Assembly (NCBI RefSeq): GCF_023055435.1
Contig: NW_025964372.1
Coordinates: forward strand, 49,414,001-49,478,000
Length of the DNA: 64,000 nt
DNA from: Haliotis rufescens
Lineage: Eukaryota
Direction: 5' to 3'
The notes under the pieces were generated by a model. The model saw only the letters and a list, made by a program, of their open reading frames with translations, was not told where the DNA came from and did no database searches. A program made the position numbers and the translations under genes. Shown one piece after another: positions 26,845-53,000 of this stretch; the first letter of the stretch is position 1; every line of letters starts with the position of its first letter.

Positions 26845-28485
26845 TCATTTCCGTTTTGTCAAAGTAACTTCGTCTTTGGCATCAAGGAAAACCACAAACC
26901 GATGACGACCTCCACCCGACTGTATGACGTATTCATGACCCTGGAGGCCATAGAACGACACCCTCGCATCCTTCCACAAGGCAGGCTTGTGATGCTCCAG
27001 GTTAGAGATGCAGGCTTGGATCTGTCGCCGTAGATACGTCCCCTCCTCGTCTGTCTCTGTACCTTCGTGGCCGACAGTCTTGATGATCAGCTTCCCCAGC
27101 GTCCTCTTGTTCACGTCCTCAACTTCCAGCTGAAACAAACCCGTGAAGATCCGGGGTAGAATAGGTCTTCAGCAACCCATGTTGCCGTGAAAGGCGACTA
27201 TGTTTGTCCTCTACTTCCAGCTGAAGAGTGGTAACATGAAGGAGAGACTGGGCCTGACATTCCTGGCATAACCTTCCCACCAAGCAGTCACACACAGATG
27301 CAGAGGAGGCCTTACTTAAAGATCGGTAAAACACTTTGGATTCTCTACGGTATATTTTACGTTATTCTTTAAAACGAAAATGTCTATTTTTGAACGTACC
27401 AAATACTTTCTTCTTGAGACAATAGAACGATACCCTTTGAACAATACCAAAGCCCTATTTTGTAAAATAATATTCGGAATAGAACACGATCAAGCTGTAC
27501 AACCTACCAAAACCGAGGGTTCGTGAGCGGACAGCTTTTCACCATGTCCTGTCTGAAAGGGAAATAGTTCTAGGATATGGAAGACAGCAATGTTCAACGT
27601 AACTTGTGTACAACGTGGCCATTCTGGCAATTTCCAATAACAAGCCTTACCTCAATTGCAGCAATGTACTGGTGTTTCATCGTCACGTCTGTCGTCAGGG
27701 AATGGAAATACAGTTATTAAACTACGGTTATAACGAACTGAAAGGGACCACTAATTTGAATTCGTTATTACCGTAGTTCGTTATATCATATGTACGACAG
27801 TTATACAGGAAATGGACAGGACCAAGAAATAGTTCGTTATATCCGTCAGTTCGTTATAAGCGCATTCGTTACAAATGCAGTTTACTGTAACCTATTTTCA
27901 TTAACAAATAATCAAACTGGAAATTTAACAGCAGTTAATTCCATACTTTCTTCTCTATTTTAAACCCGTCACGCCGAAAACCCGGGTTCGATTCCCGACA
28001 TGGGTACAATGTGTGAAGCCCATTTCTGGTGTCCCCCGCTGTGATATTGCTGGAATATATAAGGCGGCGTACCCTACCCCTGTAGATGGTATACCTTATT
28101 GTTGAGACGAACCTCCATGCGTCACGTGTCAACACGCGGAAATCAATACCTCTAACTGATGGACGGATCTCGTAGACGTTAAACACTGCATGTGATGCCA
28201 GTCGAAATATAATAATATATATGTTGATATTATTTTAGCGTTTATCGTAATGTGTAGCTCTGTTATTTTTGTGATCTGTCAAAACCGAATTTTCGCAAAT
28301 TTTTTTTAACCATATACAAAATATACAGACTAAATACATTAGCCTGAAACGTTCAGTATTGAATCTAGACAGCATATAGTTCATTAATGTTTCGTTAAAG
28401 GCTACATGTAGTTCATACAGTTTTAGACACGTGCGCGCTTGTGGAATATTTGATTATATAAACGCTCACGTACCGTGTTGCCCAT
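26845..28485 (-). CDS. Gene A1: uncharacterised 113-aa protein, putative N-myristoylated; exons 28485-28474, 27552-27508, 27129-26845
   Basis: ATGGGCAACACG|GTACGT; TTTCAG|45 nt (TGHGEKLSAHEPSVL)|GTAGGT; TTTCAG|LEVEDVNKRTLGKLIIKTVGHEG...KRK*. All introns are phase 0 and the exon sizes are identical in three paralogues. Confidence 0.8.
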
Positions 28486-28704
28486 GTTGATGCCGCTAGA
28501 ACGTATTGACTGATGGCTTCCCTCCCCTGCGTCAGTTGTGGGAGGACGGGTGGGTTTACCCAGATCCCGGGTGGGGAACTCCAGTCACGTGATCACCCAT
28601 TGTCCACAAAAACACTGCGCAGTTCCACAGACGGGAGCGGGAGTGTTCTGGGCAGTATTTTCAATTCTGACGTCATTTAAGAAGTGTTACCTCCACAAAC
28701 CAGC
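28486..28704. promoter_or_regulatory. Putative bidirectional promoter A1/B1
   Basis: 219 nt between divergent ATGs; GGGGAACTCC (kB consensus, 28573-28582), GTCACGTGAT (E-box, 28584-28593), TGACGTCA (CRE, 28668-28675); conserved blocks shared with 39388-39654. Confidence 0.6.
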
Positions 28705-31700
28705 ATGTTCAGAGTAAGTGGCCTTTGATGCATGTATTGATTACAATGTAGAACATTTCTTATTTATGCGTGATTCCAATGTGCTTAGGGTATTTCAGAC
28801 AGCTCTCCTCCAGTTCGATATCAGTCAGGGATGACTTCTCTGTATGTAAATATAAGGAACTACAAGTATAATGATAGTGAAGTCGGGATATAATGATAGT
28901 GAAGTCGGGATATAATGATAGGATGGTCGGGGTAATATGACACTGTGAAGTCGGGGTATAATGACAGTGAAGTTCAGGTATAATGATAGTGAAGTCTGAT
29001 ATTATGACAGTTAACTCTGGGTATTGTGGCAGTGAAATCTGGGTATAATGATAGTGAAGTCTGATATTATGACAGTTAACTCTGGGTATTGTGACAGTGA
29101 AGTCCTGGAATAATGATAGTGAAGTCGGGTATTATGACAGTTAACTCTGGGTATTATGACAGTGAAGTCCAGGTATAATGATAGTGAAGTCGGGTATTAT
29201 GACAGTTAACTCTGGGTATTGTGACAGTGAAGTCCAGGTATAATGATAGTGAAGTCTGATATTATGACAGTTAACTCTTGGTATTATGACAGTGAAGTCC
29301 AGGTATAATGATAGTGAAGTCGGGTATTATGACAGTTAACTCTGGATATTGTGACAGTGAAGTCTGGGTATTATGACAGTTAACTCTGGGTATTGTGACA
29401 GTGAAGTCCAGGTATAATGACAGTGAAGTCGGGTATTATGACAGTTAACTCTGGGTATTATGACAGTGAACCCTGGGTATAATGATAGTGAAGTCGGGTA
29501 TTATGACAGTTAACTCTGGGTATTATGACAGTGAAGTCCAGGTATAATGATAGTGAAGTCGGGTATTATGACAGTTAACTCTGGGTATTGTGACAGTGAA
29601 GTCCAGGTATAATGATAGTGAAGTCGGGTATTATGATAGTTAACTCTGGGTATTATGACAGTGAAGTCCAGGTATAATGACAGTGAAGTCGGGTATTATG
29701 ACAGTTAACTCTGGGTATTGTGACAGTGAAGTCTGGGTATTATGACAGTTATCTCTGGGTATTGTGACAGTGAAGTCCAGGTATAATGACAGTGAAGTCG
29801 GGTATTATGACAGTTAACTCTGGGTATTGTGACAGTGAACCCTGGGTATAATGATAGTGAAGTCGGATATTATGACAGTTAACTCTGGGTATTGTGACAG
29901 TGAAGTCCAGGTATAATGATTGTGAAGTCGGGTATTGTTACAGTTAACTCTGCGTATTATGACAGTGAAGTTGGGGTACAATGACTGCCAAGTCCTTGTA
30001 TAAACACAATCAAGTAGGAATATGGCGACCGTAAGATCTGGGTATATTGACAGTGAACTCTGGGAATGAAGAAAGAGAAACTCCGTGAAAGATGACAGTG
30101 AAGTTAGAGTATGATGACAGTCGTGACCCGGTATTACTACAATGAACTCGACCCGTGAGGATCCTGGGTAGAATAGGTCTTCAGCTACCCATGCTTGCCG
30201 TAAAAGGCGACTATGCTTGTCGTAAAAGGCGACTAACGGGATCGGGTGGTCATAACGCGAACAGGTTGAGGTACGTGTCATCGTATTCCAATTGCGTGGA
30301 TCGATTCTCAGACTCGATTATTTACAGACCGCGGTCAACTAACAAACAAACAAGGAACTCCGTCTCAAGTTTCAGTTTCAAACACAAACTTTCACACTTA
30401 CGACAATGTGGATATATATAACCTGCATCTGAACTGATGAGGACATTGTTTCGTAGATAAATGTTCTGTTTTAAATGTAGAGCTGTTCTCCGCGACAAAC
30501 ACGAACACGAATTCTTTTCTCTTTATCCGTACATTTTACCATCTTCTGTCAGTGTTATACTTGATATTCAGCAAGGTTCTCTGTGTTCAGAATGGGTAAG
30601 ACACGATGACGTCAGTTACAGTATTTAAAACTAAATTCTCCATTCTGCGAACTTATGCACTTAAGATTTAAACGGTGAAAATATGAGATAATTTGACAGT
30701 AAAATTTACTGCAAGTGGACGTGTGCGTTTGCGTGTGGCAGCCGTTGGTTATGAATTATGATTAATCTTTTCTTTTCAGGGTTCAACAAAGTCATTCCCG
30801 TTGTATTTGAGTATAAAGAATACACTAAAACAAATATACACCGTGGCTGTATGAGTGAGTGAGTTGGGTTTTAACGCCACTTTGAACAGCTTGTCAGCTC
30901 AATGTGGGAGGAAAGGCTGAAGTGATGCAGGTCTCAGACGTTTACCACTTCGGCGAAACCCACGAGCACGGGTATGGTGCTGACAAACCTAGAAACATAA
31001 TTGGGGCGAACCGGGATTCGAACCCACAATCATAGGTTTCGGAGGGACGCAACTCTGCACAGCGAATCGCGGCGCCTTAGACGACTGGGCCACCCCCGGC
31101 TACATGAAAACTACAGTTGTAATGAATGAGTGAGTGAGTTGGGTTGCACGCCGCTTTGAACAGTTTTCCAGTTATATCACGATGTGTCAGTTTAGTGTGG
31201 GAGGAAAGCCCGAAGTGATGCAGGTCTGAGATGTTTACCACATAGGTGGTACCCACGAGCACGTGTATGGTGCTGACAAACCTAGAAACATAATCGGGGC
31301 GAACCGGGATTCGAGCCCAAGATCACAGGTTTCTGGCGTGCCCAAGGGAGGCAACTCTGCACAGCGGATTGCGGCACCTTAGATGACTGTGCCCCTGTGC
31401 CCCTGTAATATATGATCACTTAGGTACAATAGCAAATAGACTACAGTTAATTCTGAACTTAATTATGATTTACAACCATTCTTAATTCAGTCATGTCAAA
31501 AGGTCATGTCTTTGGATTATGATTGCATAACACTTGATCCTACACTGGACCCTCATTCATAAAGGATTAGTAGCTTACGGTAACTGATATACTTAGTTAC
31601 TTACGTGAGGAGAATGATACCACTCTGCAAGAAACATCGCGCTGTGAATAGATCGGTTTTATCATGCACATCTATGTTAAACACCTCCTATGTTTCTGAC

Positions 31701-32016
31701 ACATCGGCTTTACCATGCATATAAGTGTTATACGTGTTATACTGGGGCGGTCGGGTAGCCTAGTGGTTTAAGCGTTCGCTCGTCACGCCGAAGACCCGGG
31801 TTCAATTCCCGACATGGGTTCAGTGTGTGAAGCCAATTTCTGGTGACCCCCGCCGTGATATTGCTGGAATATTGCTAAAAGCGGCGTAAAACCATACTCA
31901 CTCACTCACTCTGACATAACTGATCTGTTGACATATGATGTTTACTACAGGTGTATAGCATCACGTGACCACTCAGGATCAATGAATACTCAGGAAAATT
32001 ACACAGTATGTATGTA

Positions 32017-32073
<57 letters not shown>

Positions 32074-32857
32074 CTGTCAAGGTACCCAAAACACAGATGA
32101 TAAGCCTTATCTACTTATTGCGGATTTGAATAGTAGTAAACACATTCCAAGAGCCCAATTCTTTTCCTTGCAGAAGGATGACGACGATATGGTGTCTGGG
32201 GTAGGTACAAGTTCATTTTATAATTAATTAATCTCATTACAAACATACCAGCATGCGCTCATTGTTAACGTAAAAACAAAGGAGTGACTATCTGTATGTA
32301 AATCAATAGGACACCTGTTACACTAAATGGCAATGTGTAAACACCTTGCGTCATAGCCAAACTTGTTATTAATAATTAATTACTTTTGAATTGCATTCAA
32401 CGCATCTGGAGAAAGAACTGCTGATTCGTTCTTATTTAATCTTTCCTAAAGTGACATCCAGTGTGTATTGCAGATCGTGAACTGTGGCCCTTACATTGAC
32501 TTTCCCGACATCTCCGATTTCATCCAAGAGAAGCAGCACCGTCTGCTGGGCGTGGACCGGAAGGTGCTCCAGTGCTGCTACTCTGTGCTAGGGGGCGAGC
32601 CTGACTGGGTGTGGAGGAATGCCAGCATGGAGGTCTACGGGAGATTCCTCACTGTCAAGTTCTACGCCAGAAGTCAGTGCAACAAATATGTTGTGTCCAT
32701 CAACAACGAGGAAGTGACCTCACAGTGTGTCCACAGAGGGCTGCGTCTCAAGCTCAGAGATGGCTTCCGGTCGGTGTTCAGCTGGATTGCGGACACGGCT
32801 CAAACTGTTCTGGGAGCAGTGGCTGGAGGTGGCATGGGGATGCTGACCTTTCATTAA
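28705..32857 (+). CDS. Gene B1: uncharacterised 139-148 aa protein; exons 28705-28713, (30780-30806, donor mutated), 32174-32200, 32474-32857
   Basis: ATGTTCAGA|GTAAGT; TTTCAG|GSTKSFPLY|TTGAGT; TTGCAG|KDDDDMVSG|GTAGGT; TTGCAG|IVNCGPYIDF...MLTFH*. The terminal exon is GC3-rich and coding-like and aligns with the A proteins. Confidence 0.7.
28866..29980. repeat. 21-bp-based minisatellite (GGGTATTATGACAGTGAAGTC variants, about 63-bp higher-order unit) in B1 intron 1
   Basis: Direct tandem array. Confidence 0.92.
30150..30352 (+). mobile_element. Family-2 headless SINE-like element
   Basis: Starts GACCCGTGAGGATCC; AAC-rich tail; internally deleted. Confidence 0.8.
31744..31911 (+). mobile_element. 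SINE family 1, near-consensus (others: 26093-26228, 27965-28070, 33101-33263, 33620-33785, 40660-40762, 40800-40905, 43073-43205, 46237-46392)
   Basis: tRNA-like head and (CACT)n tail. Confidence 0.9.
32020..32071. repeat. (TG)n microsatellite
   Basis: Perfect dinucleotide run; a (CA)n run is also present at about 54249-54306. Confidence 0.95.
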
Positions 32858-33319
32858 TCGTAATTACATCTTTGTACTGAGAGTGATATGCAGTTACTTT
32901 GAATGTATTTTCACCTTTGAACGTACTGGGGTATCTCTTCATGTCTGGAGCCAGACCTTTTGATGTAACCCTCTGACACTCACCACAGTGATCGCGCATC
33001 AATACAATTGATTGTAATTACATCATGTCGACTACCTGCATGAAAGTGTATACCAGCTTCATGTATTCACGTTTGCTTTACTCACTAAAATTGAACATAT
33101 GAGTGAGAGAGTATGGTTTTACGCCCCTTTTAGCAATATTCCAGCAATATCACGGCGGGGGACACCAGAAATGGGCTTCACACATTGTACCCATGTCGGG
33201 AATCGAACCCGGGTCTTCGGCGTGACGAGCGAACGCTTTAACCACTAGGCTACCCGACCGCCCTGAAAAGAACACATTAATTTATGTAAATAAAGCTTGT
33301 GGGCCTCCAATTGTTACAT

Positions 33320-34185
33320 GAGATGGTTGATGGTTCTGTACTGCTGGACGGTACATAAATGAGTGTCAACCAAGCGAAGTGCCATATCAAATCGGCCCAG
33401 TTGTTCAAGGAGAGGTTTTCTGAACGACCACTGCATCGAGTTTATGTGCAGTGTGTTGAAAAGATCAGCAATCCTGCAGAGTCCTTCACTTGGGTGAAGT
33501 TGTCTGGCCTGAAAAGGGAAACAGAAGGCTTTCTGTTTGCTGCCCAGGACAAGTCACTTCCAGCTTGAAACCGTCAATGTGTGATTTTGCATCAAAATGT
33601 AAATATGAAATGTAGAAATGTGAGTGAGTGAGTATGGTTTTACGCCCCTTTTAGCAATATTCCAGCAATATGACGGCGGGAGACACCAGAAATGGGCTTC
33701 ACACATTGTACCCATGTCGGGAATCGAACCCGGGTCTTCGGCGTGTCGAGCGAACGCCTTAACCACTAGGCTACCCGACCGCCCCTTGACAGTAATGTGA
33801 TTGACAAGATTTCGGTGCCTTAGGTCTTGTACCTCCTAATCTGTTGACTGACATTGGGAGAGTACCCGGGTTTGCTACCAGGAATACAGCCCTTTTGACA
33901 ATCTGGGTAATGCAGAAGACTGCAGTGTTGGGGAGTCTTTACATTCTCCGAAAAGTTCTGGATGGGTTTGACTAGGCAGCGTTTCCTGGGAAAAGTCCCA
34001 TTCGCTGTCTGGGCTGCGTGTAGAGGGAGCAAGGGCCCTGAGCTGATGATGACCCTAACCAGCCTGACTGATCACCCAGACCCTCTTTGCTGCATTTTAT
34101 TTTAATTTGTAAAAAAAAAAAAAAAAATAAATAAATAAAAAAAAAAAAAAAAAATAAATAATAAAAATAATAATAATAATAATCC
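33320..34185 (+). mobile_element. 3' fragment of R4/Dong-like non-LTR retrotransposon
   Basis: SFTWVKLSGLKRETEGFLFAAQDKSL and MQKTAVLGS motifs followed by an A-rich/(TAA)n tail; SINE nested inside. Confidence 0.6.
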
Positions 34186-35620: not shown

Positions 35621-38600
35621 CTATATCCGTTTTGTCAAAGTAACTTCGTCTTTGGCATCAAGGAAAACCACAAACCGATGACGACCTCCACCCGACTGTA
35701 TGACGTATTCATGACCCTGGAGGCCATAGAACGACACCCTCGCATCCTTCCACAAGGCAGGCTTGTGATGCTCCAGGTTAGAGATGCAGGCTTGGATCTG
35801 TCGTCGTAGATACGTCCCCTCCTCGTCTGTCTCTGTACCTTCGTGGCCGACAGTCTTGATGATCAGCTTCCCCAGCGTCCTCTTGTTCACGTCCTCAACT
35901 TCCAGCTGAAACAGACCCGTGAAGATCCGGGTTAGAATACGTCTTCAGCAACCCATGCTTGTCGTAAAAGGCTACTATGTTTGTCGTAAGAGGTGACTTA
36001 CGGGATCGGGTGGTCAGGCTCGCTGACTTCATGTCATCGTATTCCATTTGCGTAAATCGATGCTTATGATCTCAATCACTGGATTTATGTACTCAAACTT
36101 TTAGATCTTAAACAATCTCAAGAATGGAATAAGTTTAGGGTGTGAAACGTACCAAAACCGAGGGTTTGTGAGCCGACTTCATGTCGCCGTGTCCTGTCTG
36201 AAAATAGAGAGAGGACATTGAGGAGACCAAGTAAACAGTTAATTAGTAAAATCAGTTATATCCCGGCGTGCCATCTTGATGTGGGAGAAAGTGATTCAGC
36301 TCTTGGACATTTACAACTTTGGTGAAACCCACGAGCACGGGCATGGTGCTGACAAACATAGACACATAATCAGGGCCAACTGGGATTCGAACCTACGACC
36401 ATAGGTTTCTGGCACACCTAAGGGGCGCAACTCGAATTGCTCTGCGAATTGCTCAAAGGCCTCAGGACGTTAGCCATGCGTACCCCCAATTATACGTCTG
36501 AAAGAAGATAGGCACTACTAGTTTATTTTCACATGTTATGAACTGTCACATTGGGAAGCATTTACAGTTGACGTTGATCTGATTTAATATATGTCTGAGA
36601 TAATACGTAAATTGAAAACTTGGTACAGGGTCGCTGTATTTTCTATATAGACATGTACTAGTTCACATCACATGTTAGAAAACATCAGTGGAAGACCCTG
36701 AAAGGGTACCAAAATAACTACTGCCACGAAACATAAAATCTCGTTGTTAGAATCGATTTCGGTTTTCGTATTTCAACATGACTACAATATGTTGACATTA
36801 GGAAGAAAAACAAACGTGTTTCTTCAGAAAATGAATAATACGATTCTAAAATAACATAGTTTATACAGAAATATATGGTTAGCGGTGCTTATTTCAGAGA
36901 AAGATATCTACTTTTACCTCACGTGTTCATCATACAGATGTTTAGGCGAGCCCTTCGGAATTTAAGTATGCCAAAGAAAATACTTTTGACCTATATTCAA
37001 ACTTGGTGATTTCATCTCACCAAAAGCCAGATAATAACTGGCTGTAATTTAAAAAAATCCCTGGCGCCTTTTCATTGATATTGGTAGCATCATTTCTGAA
37101 TACCCAGGATTGTTTTATGAATCATGATGCGCAGGGGAATTACCTCACGAGAAAGTATCAAAATGCTCTGTTTAATTCACGACTGCATTTTCTGCGTATT
37201 TAGTATTTATTTTATCATTTAACGGTGCTAAACCAACCAAACCCCGAACGTCAATTATGCAATGCTCCACCTGAACCATGGTATACCTCAGATAAATCAG
37301 TTAAGAATTACGCTCACTGCAGTATTTGCTCAATATTTAGCAGTTTCAAATCTCAAGTTAACATGGCCCTGAACTGGAGACGAAGTGAGTTTGATTATTA
37401 TATGTGTTCCGCAACAATTTGTCAAGTTTACTTAAGCTTATTCTGCCTTCCTTGCATTGTCAAACACATAAAATTTTATCCATGATTGTTTAAATACCTG
37501 ACGTTATTTTCGTTTTTAAACCTAGCAGTAGTTTCTGTCCTGACAATGTTGTAAATGCGAGTGATTTCGAATATTTCATTTTAAATTTTAGCATTATGCG
37601 AACAGTGAATAAAAATTCATCGTGTGTACAATTAGACCGATTTAGACAAATGTAGTGATATGGTTTGATGTGCCGAATCCAATTATTAATCATATTCCCA
37701 AACAAACCAATTTTCTAAAATTATATGAAATTCATTAAGATCGTACTTCATTGGAATCACACTGAATGAAACAGTTTTGATGCAGGATAAAAATCTTAAA
37801 TACTTAGGTTTAGGGATAGTGGTGTGGGTGGGTGTGGTGTGGGAATAATGGCCCCGCAAAATTTATATCCGACAAAATCATATTTTCGATTTCTCAATAA
37901 TTTATATAGTAACTGAACTGAACCAGTCCTATTTTCATTATATATGCTGATGGGAGTTGTCATTAAATACACGTCTTCCATAAGGTGGGGTTTTATCGTC
38001 GCCGATAGTCCATCTAGTGCAGTGCGTAATATATGATGATTTTTATTTATATAAACCCGTCAAATGATTGTCAGCAACTGGTAAATAAACTTCATTCGAT
38101 AAACGTTCTGAAAAAGCTTAGAGAAACACGAGAAAAAACACGTGACAAAACAGGACAATAGACTAGAAAATCCAACATTAAAGGGCCACCCCATACACCC
38201 CCCAAAAAACAACAACAACAACAACAACAACAACAAACAAACCCCCAAACCCAAACAAACAATAAACAAACAAAACAAAAACAACAAAAAACAAACTCAA
38301 TTCTGAAAATGTCAGGAATGAGTTATTTTATCCGACATAGAACTTTTCAACTGGTTTTCAACACGTATTTAGTACTTTCACAATAGTTATCCGAGTTTCA
38401 TAAACCTCGCGATTAACCTCGTTCTTACATCTCTGTTTCGTGTTTGATGTCAATTGGAAACTTCCCCGTTGACAAAATGAGGGGGGCTGTTCGTCTGCTT
38501 AGTAAATAGACAAAAAACGATACTCCATTGTCCAAGACAGAGAGTCATATGTCAAAGAAACAGTTCAAGTGACTACAAATTCATATTTATTGAAGAGATC

Positions 38601-39387
38601 AACGGAGACGCCAAAGCCTCCAAAGACTCCAATAACGTACCACATGATGTTTGCGACATTTCAACAAGACAACGAAGAACAACAAACTAATGGACGTATA
38701 TATTGATTGCAACACAATCTGTAACAAGAGCGTTGCGCGTTGAGGCGTGAACTGTTTTTTGTTGTGGTTAGCTTAAACTCGCATGGCCTTGAAACGTTAT
38801 AGGTGAGGTGAGGTGAAATTGGGTTTAACGTCGCGTCCAAGATTATTGCACTTATATAGCGACGTGCATGCACGTGTGTGTGTGTGTGGCTGCTTGTACT
38901 AGTCCGGACTGATGCCGATTTATAGTGCTAGCTCACTGAGATACCATGCCGCAGTTTAACATGAATACCCCACTCAGACACAGTATACTGACTCCGAGCC
39001 GACCAGTCCTTGTTTTAGCCCCTTAATGTCGAGCGCCAGACAGGGTAACAACAAGTACCATCTTTTAACGTCTTTTGGTATGACGCAGCCGGGGATCGAA
39101 CCCCGGACCTTGAAACGTAATACCCTGCTGTCACAGAATACCTTGTTTGTGAACACATATCAAGTAAGACCGCGAATTCCTGGCATGCCTCGTCGGTTTA
39201 TAACCCTGCGTGTGCTGCTGTGAAAATACGCTACTCTGAAACGTAGATGGTACCATCTTGAAATAAGTCTTATGTACTCGTTTGTTGTTTAACTATAGGA
39301 GCTTATATTAGTTCAAACATTTGTGGACACATATGTTTGTGAATAGTTGATAAGGTGATATAAACGCTTACGTACCGTGTTGCCCAT
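35621..39387 (-). CDS. Gene A2: 113-aa paralogue; exons 39387-39376, 36197-36153, 35905-35621
   Basis: MGNT|TGHGDMKSAHKPSVL|LEVEDVNKR...KRI*; canonical GT-AG sites; exon 3 nearly identical to A1. Confidence 0.8.
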
Positions 39388-39654
39388 GTTGGCGCTGCCA
39401 GAACGGAATGACGGTGTTTTTTTCCAGTCCAGCTTCAGTAGTGGAATGACGGTGGTTTTCCCAGCCCTTCTTCATTTGTGGAATGACGGGTGGGTTTTAC
39501 CATGACATGGGATCCATGACTCCAGTCACGTGATTCCCCCCATACAGAGATACTACGCAGTTCCACAGACTGGACTCTGAACAGTGTCCTGGACATTTTG
39601 TTTTATTTCTCAGTTCATTAAAGAAGTTTTACCGACACAAGCCAACATATCAAA
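39388..39654. promoter_or_regulatory. Putative bidirectional promoter A2/B2
   Basis: 267 nt; shares GACGGGTGGGTTT, CTCCAGTCACGTGAT (E-box 39525-39534) and CGCAGTTCCACAGAC with the A1/B1 spacer; overlapping kB-like GTGATTCCCC. Confidence 0.6.
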
Positions 39655-40124
39655 ATGTTCGGAGTAAGTGGCCTTTTAGTTGTTATCTGTTTCAGTTTCT
39701 TTGTGTATTGATCTGTCATTTCAATGAGTACAAGCGAGTCATGTTCTGATCTCTTTCAGTATACATGTATGTTCTAAATACTTGATACAAAAAAAAAATT
39801 ATTTTGAATTCCTGGTATATTTCCTAGTTTACCTCTAAGAACCAGTGTATACAACAGTCATGTCACCAAGTACCTCTCAGTGTTCGGAGCATGAATCTCT
39901 TTTGCCCAACATGTTGCCTTTATTTCAATAATTATCTAGATAAGTGAGTGAGTGAGTTGGTTTAACGCCACTTGTAACAATATTCCAGTTATATCACGGC
40001 ATGTTGTGGGAGGGAAGTCGGACGCGATGCAGGCCTCAGACTTTTACCACGGGGGTAAAAGTTTTTTGATGCACTAATGTACTGAAATAATGACCCTCCC
40101 CTAATACATGTTATATTTGTGGAT

Positions 40125-46392: not shown

Positions 46393-49300
46393 TTATTTCA
46401 TTTTTGAAAAGGTTATTTCGTCTCGAGCATCAAGGTGGACCATGAATCTGTAGCGTCCGCGGCCAGAGGATACCACATATTCATGACCCTGTAAGCCAAT
46501 GAACGTCACTGTAGCATCCCGCCACACTGCAGGCTTGTAATGTTCCAGGTAAGAGATGCAGACTTGGATCTGTCGCCGTAGATACGTCCCCTTCTCGTCT
46601 GTCTCTGTACCTTCGTGGCCGACTGTCTTGATGATCAGCTTTCCCAGCGTCCTCTTGTTGACTTCCTGCACTTGAAGCTGAAACAGGAAATACGCATCGA
46701 TAAATGACTTTCGTTAACTTCAACCTGCATAAGCGACATCGACATGAGTGTTTGTTTGTTTTGTTTGGTTGTTGTAAACAATCGAGTCTGTACCAGACAA
46801 TCCAGTGATTGATATCATGAGCATCAGTTATTTGGGATACGATGACCTGCATCAACCAGGTCAGCCTGTCTGACCACCCGATCCCGTCAGTCGCCTCTTA
46901 GGACAAGCATAGTCGTCTTTTACGGCAAGCGTGGGTTGCTGAAGACCTATTCTACTCCGGAATCTTCACGGGTCTGACCAAGTTCAGTTTATGTTGTGGT
47001 GCTTCCATACAATGATTATGTTCTTTAAGGTCGTGTCAGTGGGAAGAACTACGAACTACAAAAGAAAAGTTAGGAATACAAAATAAAAGATGAAACTAAC
47101 TGCATACGGCGAGCTGCGAAGTAATTTCTCCTTGCTCATTAAATGAAGTATAAACTTGACACATAATGCTTGAAATCCATCTGTGCGTGTAAATTTAATA
47201 TTCTCCTGAGGCGTTACTGCTTCGTTTTCATTATAAATCATAAAATTTTATATAAACCTGAGAAAGGTGAATAATTGCGTGGATCGATGCTCATGATATC
47301 AATCACTAGAGACTCGATTATTTACAGAGTGTCGACATAGCTGGAATATTGCTGAGTGCGGCGTTAAACAACAAACCAACCAACCAACTAAACTTGGTCT
47401 AAGTGACATATCAAATGATGTCACTGTCACTTGGTCGAAAACCAGTCTAGTCACGGCCTGGTGATCACACCGCTCCTCCGCTTAATTTGCCCGGCTTCCG
47501 TCACCATTCGGAAAAGTCCGGCAGTCATCGTCATCCAGTGTTTTTGATTTCCTTGTCAGAGAACAAGTGACCTTAAGTAAGGATAAGATATATGGATGAA
47601 CAATTTCTTTATTACAAATATGAGCGACGTTTCGGTGTAGGTTATAACTCCGTTATCAACCAAGTGATGTTCAGAGTTTAGTTGACAAGTATTTATACGG
47701 GATAGGAGGCAGTGTTTCTTCATTTGAGTAGGTTGAAGATGCAGGTACACTGGCGTGGGGAAGCCTGTTATGTACACAGAAGGATAGAACATATTTCCCG
47801 GTGTAGCCTGTTGTATGGTTTGTTTGTTGTTTAACGCCGCACTCAGCAATTTTCCAGCTATATGACGGCGGTCTGTAAATAATCGAGTCTGGACCAGACA
47901 ATCCAGTGATTGACAGCATGAACATCGATCCACGCAATTGGGATCGACGACATGTATCAACCAAGTCAGCGTGCCTGACCACCTTTTACGACAAGCATAG
48001 TCACCTTTTACGACAAGGATGGGTTGCTGAAGACCTATTCTATCTCGGAATCTTCACTGGTCGCCTGTGATATGAATCAAATGGGGAAGCCAGTAATGTA
48101 AACAGTAAAAAGGATTGTGGCTGATTGGGGTCTTCGATGAGTTGGTGGTACACCGGTGGTATGTCGTAGCCTTGGTCACGATTGATTGGTGGTTGGAGTT
48201 GGAGTCTTTTGATGTTGATGGCTTCTTGTAGTTTTCTGATTTTGAAGTCTTTGAGGTTGGTATGGCCTCAACTGCGATGGAGAGATGTCTGATTCAGCGA
48301 CGAATCAAGATTTCTCCTCCGTCGAGAGGTTGGAAGACCACGTCGGGGAGAACGTTATGCCGGAAACTGCGTACAGGAAGTGGACATGTTTGGTGGGGGT
48401 AGCGTTATTATGTGGGCGACTATCTCTCATCTTGGCAGGACAGGTCTGGTCCATATCCAGGTCAATTTTACGGCTCAACGATACAACAACGAAATTCTCC
48501 TACCACACGTCCTCCCAATTGCAGCAGACGGCAACGGTGTATTCAAGCAGGACAACGCTCTACCGCATACGCAACGGATCACAAGAGCCTGTCCACATTT
48601 TTCTCCCCTGGTCCTCCAGATCCCTGGATTTGAATCCCGTGAGCACCTGTGGGAAGAATTGGATAGACGGCTACGCCGACGTCGACCACAACGGCAGACG
48701 TTGCAGCAGTTGGCTTTTGCGTTGCAGGCCGAGTGGGCGACCATTCCCCAGGATGTGATTCGCATACTCGTCTCTGTCATGGACAGGAGATGTCAGGACG
48801 CTATCGATTCCAACGGGGGACATATGCGTTATTGATGGTAGCTGACCTTCATCATGGACATTTCCTATGTACCGATAACTGAGATGACTACAATCATCAA
48901 GTGTTCTCTCTTCAATATCTTTGCTGAATACCTTGTACTGTTCCTCGTTTAAATATATTTTCCTACCTTTACGCTACGTGATTTTTTAAGAGTACATTAT
49001 GACAGGACAGAAGTACTCACCAAAACAGTTGGAGCATGCGCTGACGATTTCTTTTGATATTCAACCTGAAATAAGGGTGAAAGTAAACTGCATTGTTTAT
49101 CTATGACATGATTTGTTGTTGAGGTGGATGCAGAAATACATCGCCCGGGGTTCAAATATACTCTTTAGGGAGTAGGGAGTCATGAACTAGAAATGTTAAT
49201 ACCAAGTATTAGAACAAAGATAAGTGTTGCAACAAACATCCTATGCATGAACGTTAATGTCACACGTTTCACTGTGTTTTTGTGTTCTTATATTTGGGTC

Positions 49301-49852
49301 GTTGCCAATGAGAAGGCCACAAACAAATGTAAACATATCTCCTCCGCGTTTGCCATATTGGGAAAGGGGTCTTACGAAAACTATTTTACACTGCGCTGTT
49401 TCAATGAAATGTGTTCTATGTTTTGCATGACCAGATACTTGAAATGGTGTACGCGACATTACAGTCATGTTTATCAGAATGGCGACCAGTCACCAATTTA
49501 TTGCAAATGTTCATTTGCCCCACCTACCATCACAACTGTAATGTCCGGACGAACCTATAGCGTTCTCATTCAGAGGGCATGAGGTAAACCACAATATATT
49601 ATGCCTTTCACAACTTGAATGAATGAACCATCCACGAAATAATCTTGTCGAAATGAGAATAAATATACCTACTTAAGGAACATATTAAAGAACACCGCAA
49701 ACCCCTTTCACGGTCAAAAGAAAGTCGACTGTACGATTCTGACTGTATTATAAACGTGTGTTTATGAAACACTTTCAAATGGGGATGATACTAGGTGTTC
49801 GCGTCATGAAACAACAGACAACATTACAGAATCTACTTACCGTGTTGCCCAT
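46393..49852 (-). CDS. Gene A3: 113-aa divergent paralogue; exons 49852-49841, 49065-49021, 46677-46393
   Basis: ATGGGCAACACG|GTAAGT; TTTCAG|VEYQKKSSAHAPTVL|GTGAGT; TTTCAG|LQVQEVNKRTLGKLIIKTVGHEG...KMK*. Many substitutions relative to A1/A2 are synonymous or conservative and the frame is preserved. Confidence 0.82.
47560..48260 (-). mobile_element. Penelope-like fragment with degenerate hammerhead motif, interrupted by a family-2 element (47818-48062)
   Basis: Minus strand TTGATAA-CGGAGT-TATAACCT-ACACC-GAAAC-GTC at about 47659-47626. Confidence 0.4.
48270..48835 (+). mobile_element. Tc1 transposase remnant in A3 intron 2
   Basis: FGGGSVIMWATIS, FKQDNALPH, LPWSSRSLDLNP / EHLWEEL (frameshifted DDE domain). 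Confidence 0.9.
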
Positions 49853-50024: not shown

Positions 50025-53000
50025 ATGGGAAACGTAAGTAATCATTTCTGTCTTAATTAGAAATGTTCCAGGATTCTTTGTGAAATATTGCTGGGTAATG
50101 AAACCCAGTTAGCCATGACCTCGTTTGTCTGGAAACTCCAGGTTCCGGAAAATTGCTGTTATGAAACTTCACAAAAATACAAGGACTAACTCCGTATCCA
50201 TGGTTCGTTTCGCCCAGAAAGTTCAAACAACAGTTAGGGTCATGAAAACCTCTTCGAAAAAGGGAAACGGTATAATCAGTACAAATATTATTTTATGATG
50301 AAACTAGAATTATTGTGGCATCCATAAATTCTCTTCCTTATTTACTGAGGGGGCGCGATTCGCTGTGCAGAGTTGCGTCCCTTGACCACGCCAGAAACCT
50401 ATGATTGTGGGTTCGTATCCCGGTTCGCCCAAATCATGTTTCTAGGTTTGTCAATACCATACTCGTGCTCGTGGGTTTCGCCGAAGTGGTAAATGTCCGA
50501 GACCTGCATCACTTCGGGCTTTCCTCCCACTTTGAGCTGACTGTATAACTGTAATACGGTTAAAAGCGGTGTTAAACCCAACTCACTCACTCCTTATGCA
50601 CTGCCCAGGTTTATATAACACGGTTGCAATGCTCCAGGCTTGACTTGATTTTTCGTGTTCTTTTTCTTATCTGTTGTTGTGACATACAGCGGTATGTGGC
50701 GCTCAAGGGCTTTTTACTTCTAGTCCCTGTGTAATGTTATCAACACTTGTGGCAAGCCGATATCTAAATGCAAAAGATCCCTCCGCTCCTCCTAAATGAA
50801 TATCCTCTGTAATCTTAAGGTGACAACCCACACGCCTCTAACACACGGCGCAACGACTTGACAAACGTACCGGGCGGAGGGGTGGGCTGGGGTGGGGTGG
50901 GGTGGGATGGGATGGGATGGGTCGGGATGGGGTGGGGTGGGGTGGGGTGAGGGGAGAGCAGTGGCACACAGTTCACCCAACCTTTGTCAAAGAATGACAA
51001 CATATGGTATGCCATGTGTAGCGCGGTGCGACAGATTGTGAAGCTGTTCCTGGACCTAAGGGTGACCAGGCCATGTCACACAATGAGACTTGCAGAATCT
51101 ATTCACCAACGTGAACAGTTTTAGAAGCACTTTATCACTATGCATGTGGCGTCAGAATACACAACTGCTTGTCGGGGCTTTAATTTTTCACACTGGAAGG
51201 TAACAGAGTCGACTTTCTAAACAAGCTGCCCAGGAAAATATGTTGACAGGTGTGGTCATATCTGATTTTTTTACGTATTTTGAAGAATAGTAGGCGTGAT
51301 CGGTAAAATCTGTGCTAGAGTTTACCTTTTAGTCTCCAAACGCCTCTCTGTGTCATCCCAGGGACCAGTCTGTGAGAGGACTCTAGTCCTGCGTCGACGT
51401 GCACTATGCTTATGATATTCAGTTGATTAGAAAGACCAGAAACGCAATATATCTCAACACAGCAAGACCCGTGAAGATCCGGGGTAGAATAGGTCTTCAG
51501 CAACCCATACTTGCCGTAAAAGGCGACTATGTTTGTCGTTAGAGGCGACTAACGGGTTCCGGTGGTCAGGCTCGCTGACTTGGTTGATGCATGTCATCGT
51601 AACTCTATTACGTTGATCGATGCTCATGATGTCAATACCTGGATTGTCTGGTCCAGACTCGATTATTTACAGACCGCCGTCATATAGCTGGAATATTGCT
51701 GAGTGCGGCGTTAAACAACAAACAAACAAACAAAAATATGCAGGCAGGGGAGATAATCCATATCGCAGACAAAATTGGATGTTGCACTTTGACATTTCCC
51801 TTGGCGCTCACTGCATTAGCGATTTGTTTGCAATTTAAAAAAAAATCTAAATAGTTGAAGTCTGCAGCCACTGGTCCTGTAAGAACAAAATGATTTCATG
51901 TCGCGTAAGGGGTTGAAGTAGCGTAAAATTATTGTCCCCCTAACAGGGTATGTCAGTCCCACATCATTCAATGTATTGTTATGCATACCAGAATTTTAAA
52001 ACGTAGTATTTTTGTCATTTTAATCTAAGGCTTAACTGGTAAACTATCGCCAGTGACTGAAGGGATGATATAAATTAAATCCAGCCAGGGCCCATGCAGG
52101 AAGAAAAGGCACTGTAAGTCCCCATTGTCCCAGGTATGGTGATCTCCCTTTAGTTACACACGATCTCTAGCCCATTTTTATATTGTGTTGTAAATTCTTT
52201 CTGCTTTTATATGTTCCTCAACTAGCTTTAATACACTCTGTGATATTCTAGTTATTGTACTGTCCTTTGATGACAGGTTTTTATAAAGTATATATACTTA
52301 TATGTTATTAATGTATTAATTCTCGTCACTATATTGCTGAAATATTGCCGATGTGACGTTAAATTCTCACTCACTCACTCATGTCGCGTAAGAACGAATA
52401 ATTGGTATAGTTGACAGCCACATCCCGTTTTGTCGATCAGGTTATCTGACACCTGGAATATGTCGCACTGAAAGCTTAACACTGTGTCCAGGAGGCTAAC
52501 CAACACAGTCAGGCTATAGACCGAAACAGGCTATAACGTCACGGTTGAGTGATTTCTATATTTGAACAATATAGACTTTTCATTTCTTAGTAGCTAACAT
52601 TTGTTGAAGTGTTGCCAACATCTGGCCATAGATATGCCTGCTCGCTCTTGATTGGACGTAGGCATGACAACCCATGTAAACCTTCCGGGTACATTCTGCG
52701 TATTATTGTCGGTCAGGTCAAGTTCAAGTGTATCCTCATAAATCACAACATGTGATACAGAGAGGATATAAATACATCTGTACACATATACAGACATAGA
52801 TTTGTTCAGTGAGAATTCGTAGATTGTAATAATAAAGCTTGGAGTTGATTGCTTAACTCTAAGTATACGCTTGAAATATTTCAAATGGATTCTTTCAATC
52901 ATAACTGACATTACAAGGCCCCGCAGTTCAGAGGCGTATAATATTGGTTGAATGGTGTGGTATGGTTATCGAATTATGTTAATAGACTAAACGTATGCAT

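Follow-up and report, generated by a model that had tools for sequence, protein, structure and literature searches.

The question raised by this stretch of DNA from the abalone Haliotis rufescens is whether two small, divergently transcribed genes within it, here called A and B, descend from a single ancestral gene. The stretch, referred to below as the window, comprises 64,000 nucleotides of contig NW_025964372.1 (labelled C594; positions 49414001–49478000, forward strand), and further members of the family lie on contigs labelled C13 and C557. A encodes a protein of about 113 amino acids, while B proteins have 139–149, with 139 in B1, the partner of the first A gene. An earlier reading of the nucleotide sequence alone (the original prediction) had proposed that A and B share a hidden domain and that the two are ancient paralogues, the products of an old inverted duplication followed by specialisation. 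The sequence comparisons described here indicate that A and B are almost certainly homologous and members of one family. The fuller explanation, in which they are paralogous small proteins that each carry one copy of the same compact alpha/beta domain and in which a mechanism is also proposed for the pair, is considered probable.

In B1 the whole domain, together with a C-terminal tail, is encoded by the terminal exon (32474–32857 including the stop, plus strand), an open reading frame whose product matches the H. rufescens model P0005 at 100% identity. Position 32474 is the first base past a cag acceptor; the coding part runs from 32474 to 32854 and a TAA stop follows at 32855–32857, so that the span to which the original prediction had drawn attention, 32474–32760, makes up the first three quarters of the terminal coding exon. 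The A gene of the same pair likewise encodes its entire domain in its terminal exon (26848–27129, minus strand), as located by tblastn, peptide position and splice reading. The peptides compared in the original prediction were recovered in the frames given there: the B1 peptide RKVLQCCYSVLGGEPDWVWRNASMEVYG at 32558–32641 (plus), the A1-type peptide twice, at 26947–27030 and 35723–35806 (both minus), and the A3-type peptide at 46495–46578 (minus). Exons were searched one by one, and the full-length sequences used are database proteins.

The relationship between A and B becomes apparent when profiles are compared. With eight A and nine B genomic copies, hhalign returned an E-value of 7e-5 over 53 columns. 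A profile of 13 A proteins, including distant bivalve ones, aligned with B over 60 columns with 88% probability and an E-value of 2.9e-6, in the register originally proposed, with NKYVV set against HRFVV; the distant proteins added to this profile were Ruditapes philippinarum LOC132752745 (P0016, from the cluster of P0013), P0014, P0015 and P0017. Against a profile of 154 B-superfamily domains, from which A sequences were excluded, the A profile reached 98.2% and an E-value of 4e-14. The aligned columns correspond to 32549–32719 in B1 (plus strand; GVDRKVLQ to NNEEVT, comprising helix alpha-2 and a beta-meander) and to 26863–27042 in A (minus strand; GTYLRRQIQ to DAKDEVT), with A and B about 25% identical over 60 residues. 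The shared domain, in the motif and register first put forward, is thus upheld by the profile–profile comparison.

The controls were in keeping with this result. The true hhalign score was 41.2, while 250 gap-free column shuffles scored 11.8 ± 2.4 with a maximum of 20.9, and reversal of the B alignment gave 10.5. A single score of 132.9 among 400 naive shuffles of the gappy B alignment was rejected as an artefact, being an insert-ridden alignment at the template end which yielded an empty output on realignment; it was for this reason that the null was rebuilt from gap-free shuffles. When a B-only profile of 31 B-type proteins was searched in six frames against the whole 1.33-Gb genome, 11 B exons were followed by eight A exons (E 2e-4 to 5e-3) and by nothing else. 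Conversely, a hidden Markov model (HMM) of A alone matched proteins found by the B profile, always in one register (HMM positions ~53–110); the best single domains were those of P0052 (35 bits) and amphioxus P0036 (32.5 bits), and a Ptychodera protein with ten repeats totalled 82 bits. The B profile itself scored B1 at 219 bits and A at 13–21 bits by HMM, in the right register, or at about 30 bits in the genome search.

That the resemblance reflects chance, or convergence between unrelated small proteins in each of which amphipathic strands happen to follow a helix, is essentially refuted: the in-window match is only 32% over 28 residues with an E-value of 0.1–0.2, the N-terminal thirds do not align and the one aberrant naive shuffle shows that hhalign can misbehave on gappy input, but the signal rises with profile depth (E 7e-5, then 3e-6, then 4e-14), the true score is well clear of the shuffled and reversed controls, A exons are the sole non-B matches genome-wide, bridging proteins are matched by both HMMs in a single register, and gene structure and predicted secondary structure are common to A and B.

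The domain comprises some 60–80 residues, is encoded almost wholly by the terminal exon and has the signature R-R-x-[IL]-Q ... W-[KR]-[DN]-A-x-[VI] ... S-G-x3-[NR]-x-[FY]-V-V-x-L-[DN]. An AlphaFold model of A, computed from a 13-sequence alignment, has a mean predicted local distance difference test score (pLDDT) of 78.9 and a predicted template modelling score of 0.73. Its elements are a strand (residues 18–22), a helix (27–37), a long helix (47–65, continuing to 68–73) and strands at 74–79, 85–90, 95–101 and 107–112. The motif common to A and B corresponds to the long helix and the four-strand meander, so that the predicted structure agrees with the expectation of one helix followed by several beta-strands. 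The B model, built from only nine sequences, has the same order of elements with an additional C-terminal helix. Its pLDDT of 52 was too low for A and B to be superimposed, and the structural comparison therefore bears out the order of elements and does not extend to the fold.

No known domain was recognised. Searches of the A exons, the B exons and 31 diverse members against curated Pfam, NCBIfam and PADLOC gave no domain match, and comparison of the profile with PDB sequences gave none to the domain. Foldseek searches of the PDB and a wide VIA-align search with the A model revealed no clear fold match, the best structural neighbours being REDD1 and HORMA/ATG101-like alpha/beta sandwiches, which are not a clear match either. 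The ESM Atlas, queried with the B1 exon and P0036, returned no usable match, and literature searches by accession, LOC number and keyword found no paper on the A or B proteins. A described parallel is TRADD-N, a small alpha+beta domain built in two layers, with an antiparallel sheet of four strands, according to passages of Kaur et al. 2021 (PMC8195603). TRADD-N has an RRM-like order of elements, strand, helix, two strands, helix, strand, as given in the same passages, whereas the A model has strand, helix, helix and four strands. Membership of TRADD-N was not supported, in view of this different order and of the absence of any match to Pfam TRADD_N in 34 distinct proteins scanned singly. A domain like that of A and B is not described in the passages of PMC8195603 consulted.

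The original prediction had also called the relationship ancient, and the distribution of the domain accords with this. When 1.84 billion protein representatives were searched exhaustively with HMMER, the B profile matched 64 proteins at E ≤ 1e-3. The family so defined has the profile motif DRRLLQ ... WVWKNA ... SGxxxNKFVV in a core of about 80 profile positions. P0049, P0050, P0054, P0067 and P0070, in which a short stretch of the profile was matched many times, were set aside as probable repeat or composition artefacts. Both A and B are present in four species of Haliotis, and A-type proteins occur in the bivalve Ruditapes. In Branchiostoma the domain exists singly and in fusions with CARD (P0020), CARD plus B-box (P0063), TIR (P0040, P0088) and a zinc ribbon (P0027, P0033, P0034), while the hemichordates Ptychodera and Glandiceps have proteins with 3–10 tandem domains. 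A SAM fusion is seen in P0069. Pfam matches in the fused relatives are confined to the N-terminal part (zinc-ribbon, CARD, TIR, SAM and B-box). The family is patchy, being represented in molluscs, cephalochordates and hemichordates with no vertebrate or arthropod among matches with a named organism, and no A-type sequence was found outside the named molluscs. Judged from these searches, the domain defines an undescribed and unannotated bilaterian family. It is far older and more widespread than the A/B pair.

On sequence grounds B represents the typical form of the family and A a strongly diverged, tail-less branch of gastropods and bivalves. The B-type C-terminal extension comprises the motif GW[RK]L.[RK]DG....W and, after it, an end which is Gly/Ala-rich or frankly hydrophobic. 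It is found in B1 (32720–32854, plus strand, as GLRLKLRDGF.SV.SW), in amphioxus and in other members, and is kept among B-type proteins from Haliotis to amphioxus. The tail is always at the extreme C-terminus, even in the CARD-fused P0020, and in the two-domain CARD protein it is carried by the last domain only. A, by contrast, stops directly after its last strand, and an invariant NKR..GK..GHEG block precedes the shared part. The absence of the C-terminal B motif marks A as a separate tail-less subfamily. Together with a rate of evolution about half that of B, these features bear out the proposed specialisation.

The arrangement of the genes is that of a true head-to-head pair, since the start codons of A and B1 lie on opposite strands and 219 bp apart. 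Both families share a gene plan in which a first coding exon of 9–12 nt and a second of 27–45 nt, separated by phase-0 introns, precede a third and last coding exon encoding the folded part. In B1, exon 1 (ATGTTCAGA, encoding MFR and followed by a gtaagt donor) was found by pattern search at 28705–28713 (plus) and is the start of P0005. Exon 2 (KDDDDMVSG; 27 nt, phase 0; acceptor and donor read) lies at 32174–32200 (plus) and corresponds to P0005 residues 4–12. H. rufescens LOC125376919 matches the B1 translation at 100% identity. In A, exon 1 (ATGGGCAACACG, encoding MGNT, a candidate N-myristoylation signal) lies at 28474–28485 (minus) and is the start of P0001/P0002. Exon 2 (45 nt, phase 0; splice sites read) lies at 27508–27552 (minus; compare P0001 residues 5–19). 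The A translation is 97–99% identical to H. rufescens and H. cracherodii proteins. The 219 bp between the start codons (28486–28704, assigned to neither strand) would contain the 5' untranslated regions and a candidate bidirectional promoter, and hold an E-box type element, GTCACGTGA (28584–28592), and a palindromic cAMP response element (CRE)-like site, TGACGTCA (28668–28675).

All three A copies in the window face a B or B-like first exon. The second A1-type gene has its terminal exon at 35624–35905 (shared segment 35639–35818) and exon 1 at 39376–39387, and the A3-type gene has its terminal exon at 46396–46677 (shared segment 46411–46590) and exon 1 at 49841–49852, all on the minus strand. 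Opposite them on the plus strand are the B-like first coding exons ATGTTCGGA (MFG; 39655–39663) and ATGGGAAAC (MGN; 50025–50033), respectively. The window contains only one B terminal exon, that of B1. None matching the MFG first exon was found in the window, and there is none before the next A gene (39.7–46.3 kb), so that the B partner of the second A copy has apparently been decapitated or lost. An E-box of the GTCACGTGA type is retained beside this second A copy and the B remnant, at 39525–39533.

Across the genome, the six-frame search identified 11 B-type and 14 A-type terminal exons, which co-cluster on C594 (49.44–49.53 and 51.93–52.07 Mb), C13 and C557. Each Haliotis A has an adjacent B, and the head-to-head orientation is preserved at all four Haliotis loci; at C557 no more than about 1 kb separates the A ATG from the B 5' exons, and the orientation is also kept at C13. 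The A/B unit would thus have been copied as a head-to-head block to at least four loci. The two clusters on C594, about 2.5 Mb apart, have opposite orientations (A minus and B plus in the first, reversed in the second), which points either to an inverted segmental duplication on a large scale or to a duplicate in the assembly.

Whether the pair itself arose by inverted duplication is a separate matter. The A and B families have an identical internal topology, ((C594 type 1, type 2),(C13, C557)). This, with the orientation kept at C557 and C13, implies that the pair predates these old duplications, which are saturated at synonymous sites (dS). In the tree the A sequences group together as a clade (100/100 support), set apart by a very long stem of 1.66–1.74 substitutions per site, and Haliotis B forms another clade, with an unresolved backbone. 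When A and Haliotis B were forced into a single clade, the resulting tree was not rejected (p-AU 0.81) and lay 15 log-likelihood units above the quick free tree. The inverted duplication of the original prediction is consequently plausible: the head-to-head order at four loci and the constrained tree speak for it, while the free tree does not settle the sister group of A. The start codons, 219 bp apart on opposite strands and kept so arranged in every unit copy, recall head-to-head paralogue pairs with a bidirectional promoter. Typical inverted tandem duplicates differ, however, in that the A and B partners are only about 25% identical and have different domain accessories, from which it follows that the pair is much older.

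The alternative which best survives is that A stems from a different and older branch of the family, and that the head-to-head order was created by juxtaposition and then copied, rather than by a local inverted duplication. In its favour, the free trees place A on its long stem at the backbone and not beside Haliotis B, the occurrence of A-type proteins in bivalves makes the split older than Haliotis, and the domain family predates molluscs. The acceptability of the constrained tree argues against it, as do the plan of micro-exons, with MG encoded by the first, which A and B have in common, the failure to find A-type sequences beyond the named molluscs and the neighbouring B of every Haliotis A. 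Juxtaposition is rated as unlikely, albeit the most serious of the alternatives.

Since their separation the two families have evolved differently. Between C13 and C557 the nonsynonymous divergence (dN) is 0.24 for A and 0.47 for B, and over the older splits both families have been under purifying selection (dN/dS 0.12–0.25). Three recent B type-2 terminal exons on C594 (L007, 52058632–52059012, minus; L008, 51932737–51933117, minus; L009, 49508821–49509201, plus) show ratios of nonsynonymous to synonymous differences per site (pN/pS) of 1.3–1.95, with 28–41 nonsynonymous and 4–8.5 synonymous differences; the changes cluster in the domain and hardly touch the tail. The pattern hints at diversifying selection on B type 2 while A has stayed constant, the excess not being significant pair by pair as synonymous changes are few.

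Both families offer candidate signals for attachment to membranes. The consensus for N-myristoylation has Gly at position 2 after the Met; the residue at position 3 is small and uncharged, and Ser or Thr is favoured at position 6. MG starts are present in P0001–4, P0007/8, P0010–12, P0022, P0035 and P0045; by reading of the sequences, the fit is full in B type 2 (MGSGAS), P0022 (MGVANS), P0035 and P0045, and partial in A1 (MGNTTG). The A-type P0013, P0014 and P0017 have no MG start and end instead, after a basic stretch, in CAAX-like sequences (CIIM, CLLM), and the full-length Ruditapes P0016 ends in CILA, which suggests that the putative lipid anchor was swapped from the N- to the C-terminus between A lineages. 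Hydrophobic C-termini resembling tail-anchors, for which a single hydrophobic segment at least some 18 residues long and lying in the last 30 or so residues was required, are clear in P0058, P0064 and P0069. Members of the family are thus predicted usually to carry a membrane anchor, be it an N-myristoyl signal in A and most B proteins, a CAAX-like box in A of the bivalve type or a hydrophobic C-terminal tail in many B-type relatives, and on balance A and B seem likely to be tethered to membranes.

These features can be combined in a model of function. A and B would be co-transcribed from a common bidirectional promoter, and both proteins, by virtue of their lipid or hydrophobic anchors, would act at the cytosolic face of a membrane. 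The domain may be a protein–protein interaction or oligomerisation module of innate-immune or cell-death-type signalling, as its arrays of 5–10 tandem repeats in hemichordates and its fusions with CARD, CARD plus B-box, TIR, SAM and zinc ribbons suggest. A, lacking the tail, may partner or regulate B by way of the domain which they have in common. A and B would then be domain-only members among the shuffled immune and death adaptors of invertebrates (PMC8195603, PMC2575513). An adaptor role of immune type, argued by analogy, is a tentative proposal, and direct heteromerisation of A with B is doubtful. Prediction of a complex between B (P0007 residues 20–149) and A (P0004 residues 14–113) gave a score of 0.00, in a run in which alignments were unused and the fold of the partner was uncertain, and weighs on neither side of the question of binding.

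Two known systems illustrate the kind of role envisaged. The adaptor MAVS has an N-terminal CARD and a C-terminal tail-anchor. Amphioxus P0020 and P0063 similarly have an N-terminal CARD, and P0020 ends in the hydrophobic or amphipathic tail of the family, and the general design, with a death-fold module anchored at a membrane, is the same. There is no relation to MAVS in sequence or fold, however; the Haliotis A and B proteins lack a CARD, and the alpha/beta domain has no MAVS counterpart. TRADD-N and other death-fold-associated modules resemble the family in their history: they too are patchily distributed in molluscs, hemichordates and cephalochordates, have expanded greatly in particular lineages and have been shuffled together with adaptor domains, Death-like and TIR among them, according to the passages of PMC8195603 consulted.

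A and B could, on the other hand, be housekeeping subunits of a membrane scaffold, for instance of a trafficking or lysosome-associated complex, with no immune link, the CARD and TIR fusions of amphioxus being co-options confined to that lineage or gene-model artefacts. Small N-myristoylated alpha/beta proteins often serve as scaffold subunits, the intergenic region has the GTCACGTGA-type E-box and the CRE-like site, and A has been under steady purifying selection. The family is nevertheless patchy, with lineage-specific expansions, tandem repeats and shuffling with CARD, TIR, SAM and B-box, a pattern which is typical of invertebrate immune and death networks (PMC8195603, PMC2575513) and not of core machinery. 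A housekeeping role is accordingly regarded as rather improbable.

Less probable still is an arrangement of the toxin/antidote kind, in which the amphipathic, Gly-rich C-terminal helix of B would perturb or permeabilise membranes and A would be a co-expressed tail-less inhibitor or chaperone. It would fit a tail kept across phyla and always placed at the extreme C-terminus, CARD-fused P0020 included, GxxxG-like spacing in several tails, a weak Pfam match (E 0.05) of one member to an antimicrobial peptide family, the tight head-to-head linkage of the genes, and the fast change of recent B type-2 copies in the domain with the tail constant. A glycine-zipper-like pattern is present in only six of 36 tails, however, the pN/pS excess derives from few synonymous changes, and a plain tail-anchor accounts for the same conservation. 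At the speculative end, and with little probability attached to it, stands the notion that domain and tail form a hitherto unrecognised module which acts on membranes, as executioner or adaptor, in the innate immunity and cell death of bilaterians, recruited by CARD or TIR in amphioxus and present in abalone as a two-gene cassette in which a slow, tail-less A controls a fast, tail-bearing B.

The preferred account, of paralogous, membrane-tethered members of one domain family, has to accommodate several observations which weigh against it. The tblastn match of A to B within the window is weak, though each is the best non-self match of the other. Sequence alignment covers only about 60 columns and leaves out the N-terminal strand and helix, which cannot be aligned between the two proteins, and the B model is of low confidence. 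B1-type proteins start with MFR and have no MG signal, while A3-type proteins (MGNTVE) have Glu at position 6, a poor residue for the N-myristoyltransferase consensus. The end of B1, TVLGAVAGGGMGMLTFH, has a short and Gly-rich hydrophobic stretch which could equally be an in-plane amphipathic helix. Synonymous divergence is unequal, with a proportion of synonymous differences (pS) of ~0.4 for A1/A3 and ~0.7 for B1/B type 2 on C594, which means either that the duplications were not strictly joint or that A was homogenised by gene conversion. Finally, the fusions with CARD, TIR and SAM belong to other phyla, are gene models obtained by computation and have little bearing on domain-only mollusc proteins.

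Several further features of the array were observed. In the B1-type copies L004, L005 and L006, whose B exons begin at residue 18, a tRNA-like short interspersed nuclear element (SINE), ggggcggtcgggtagcctagtggt..., abutting the IQEKQ codon, has taken the place of the exon's 5' part; to judge from their sequences, these are probably truncated or pseudogenised B copies. L003/L012 have a frameshift-like break at the same place as this SINE junction. Among the A copies, in-frame stops occur in L024 (TGA; C594:49500657–49500917, minus) and in L027 and L028 (TAG), and L025–L028 lack the first 14 codons of the exon, so that the array includes A pseudogenes. The weak genomic matches L014, L015 and L031 are retroelement reverse transcriptase or simple repeats and hence not members of the family. 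Copies of tRNA-derived SINEs flank or interrupt the A/B genes of the window at 31745–31850 (plus), 33110–33265 (minus), 33625–33790 (minus) and 27960–28080 (minus), and a (GT)n microsatellite lies inside the B1 intron at about 32016–32072. Upstream of the A terminal exon (27130–27240, minus) are two near-identical blocks, each of an acceptor plus CTGGAAGT(A/T)GAGGAC, about 90 bp apart. The NCBI isoforms P0001 and P0002 differ in their second exon, and the arrangement would fit gene conversion.

The main consequence is that two abalone proteins annotated only as uncharacterized LOC entries become members of one definable domain family, for which there is no Pfam entry, solved structure or recognisable fold. 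If A and B are ordinary membrane scaffolds, the value of this finding is confined to annotation. Otherwise the domain would be a new component of the innate-immune and cell-death networks which marine invertebrates have assembled by domain shuffling, and A and B, as two small, linked and probably lipid-anchored proteins, would offer a simple experimental entry to it. Abalone are farmed and are hit by bacterial and viral disease, and a family of immune type with a rapidly evolving partner would, if this proves true, be of practical interest.

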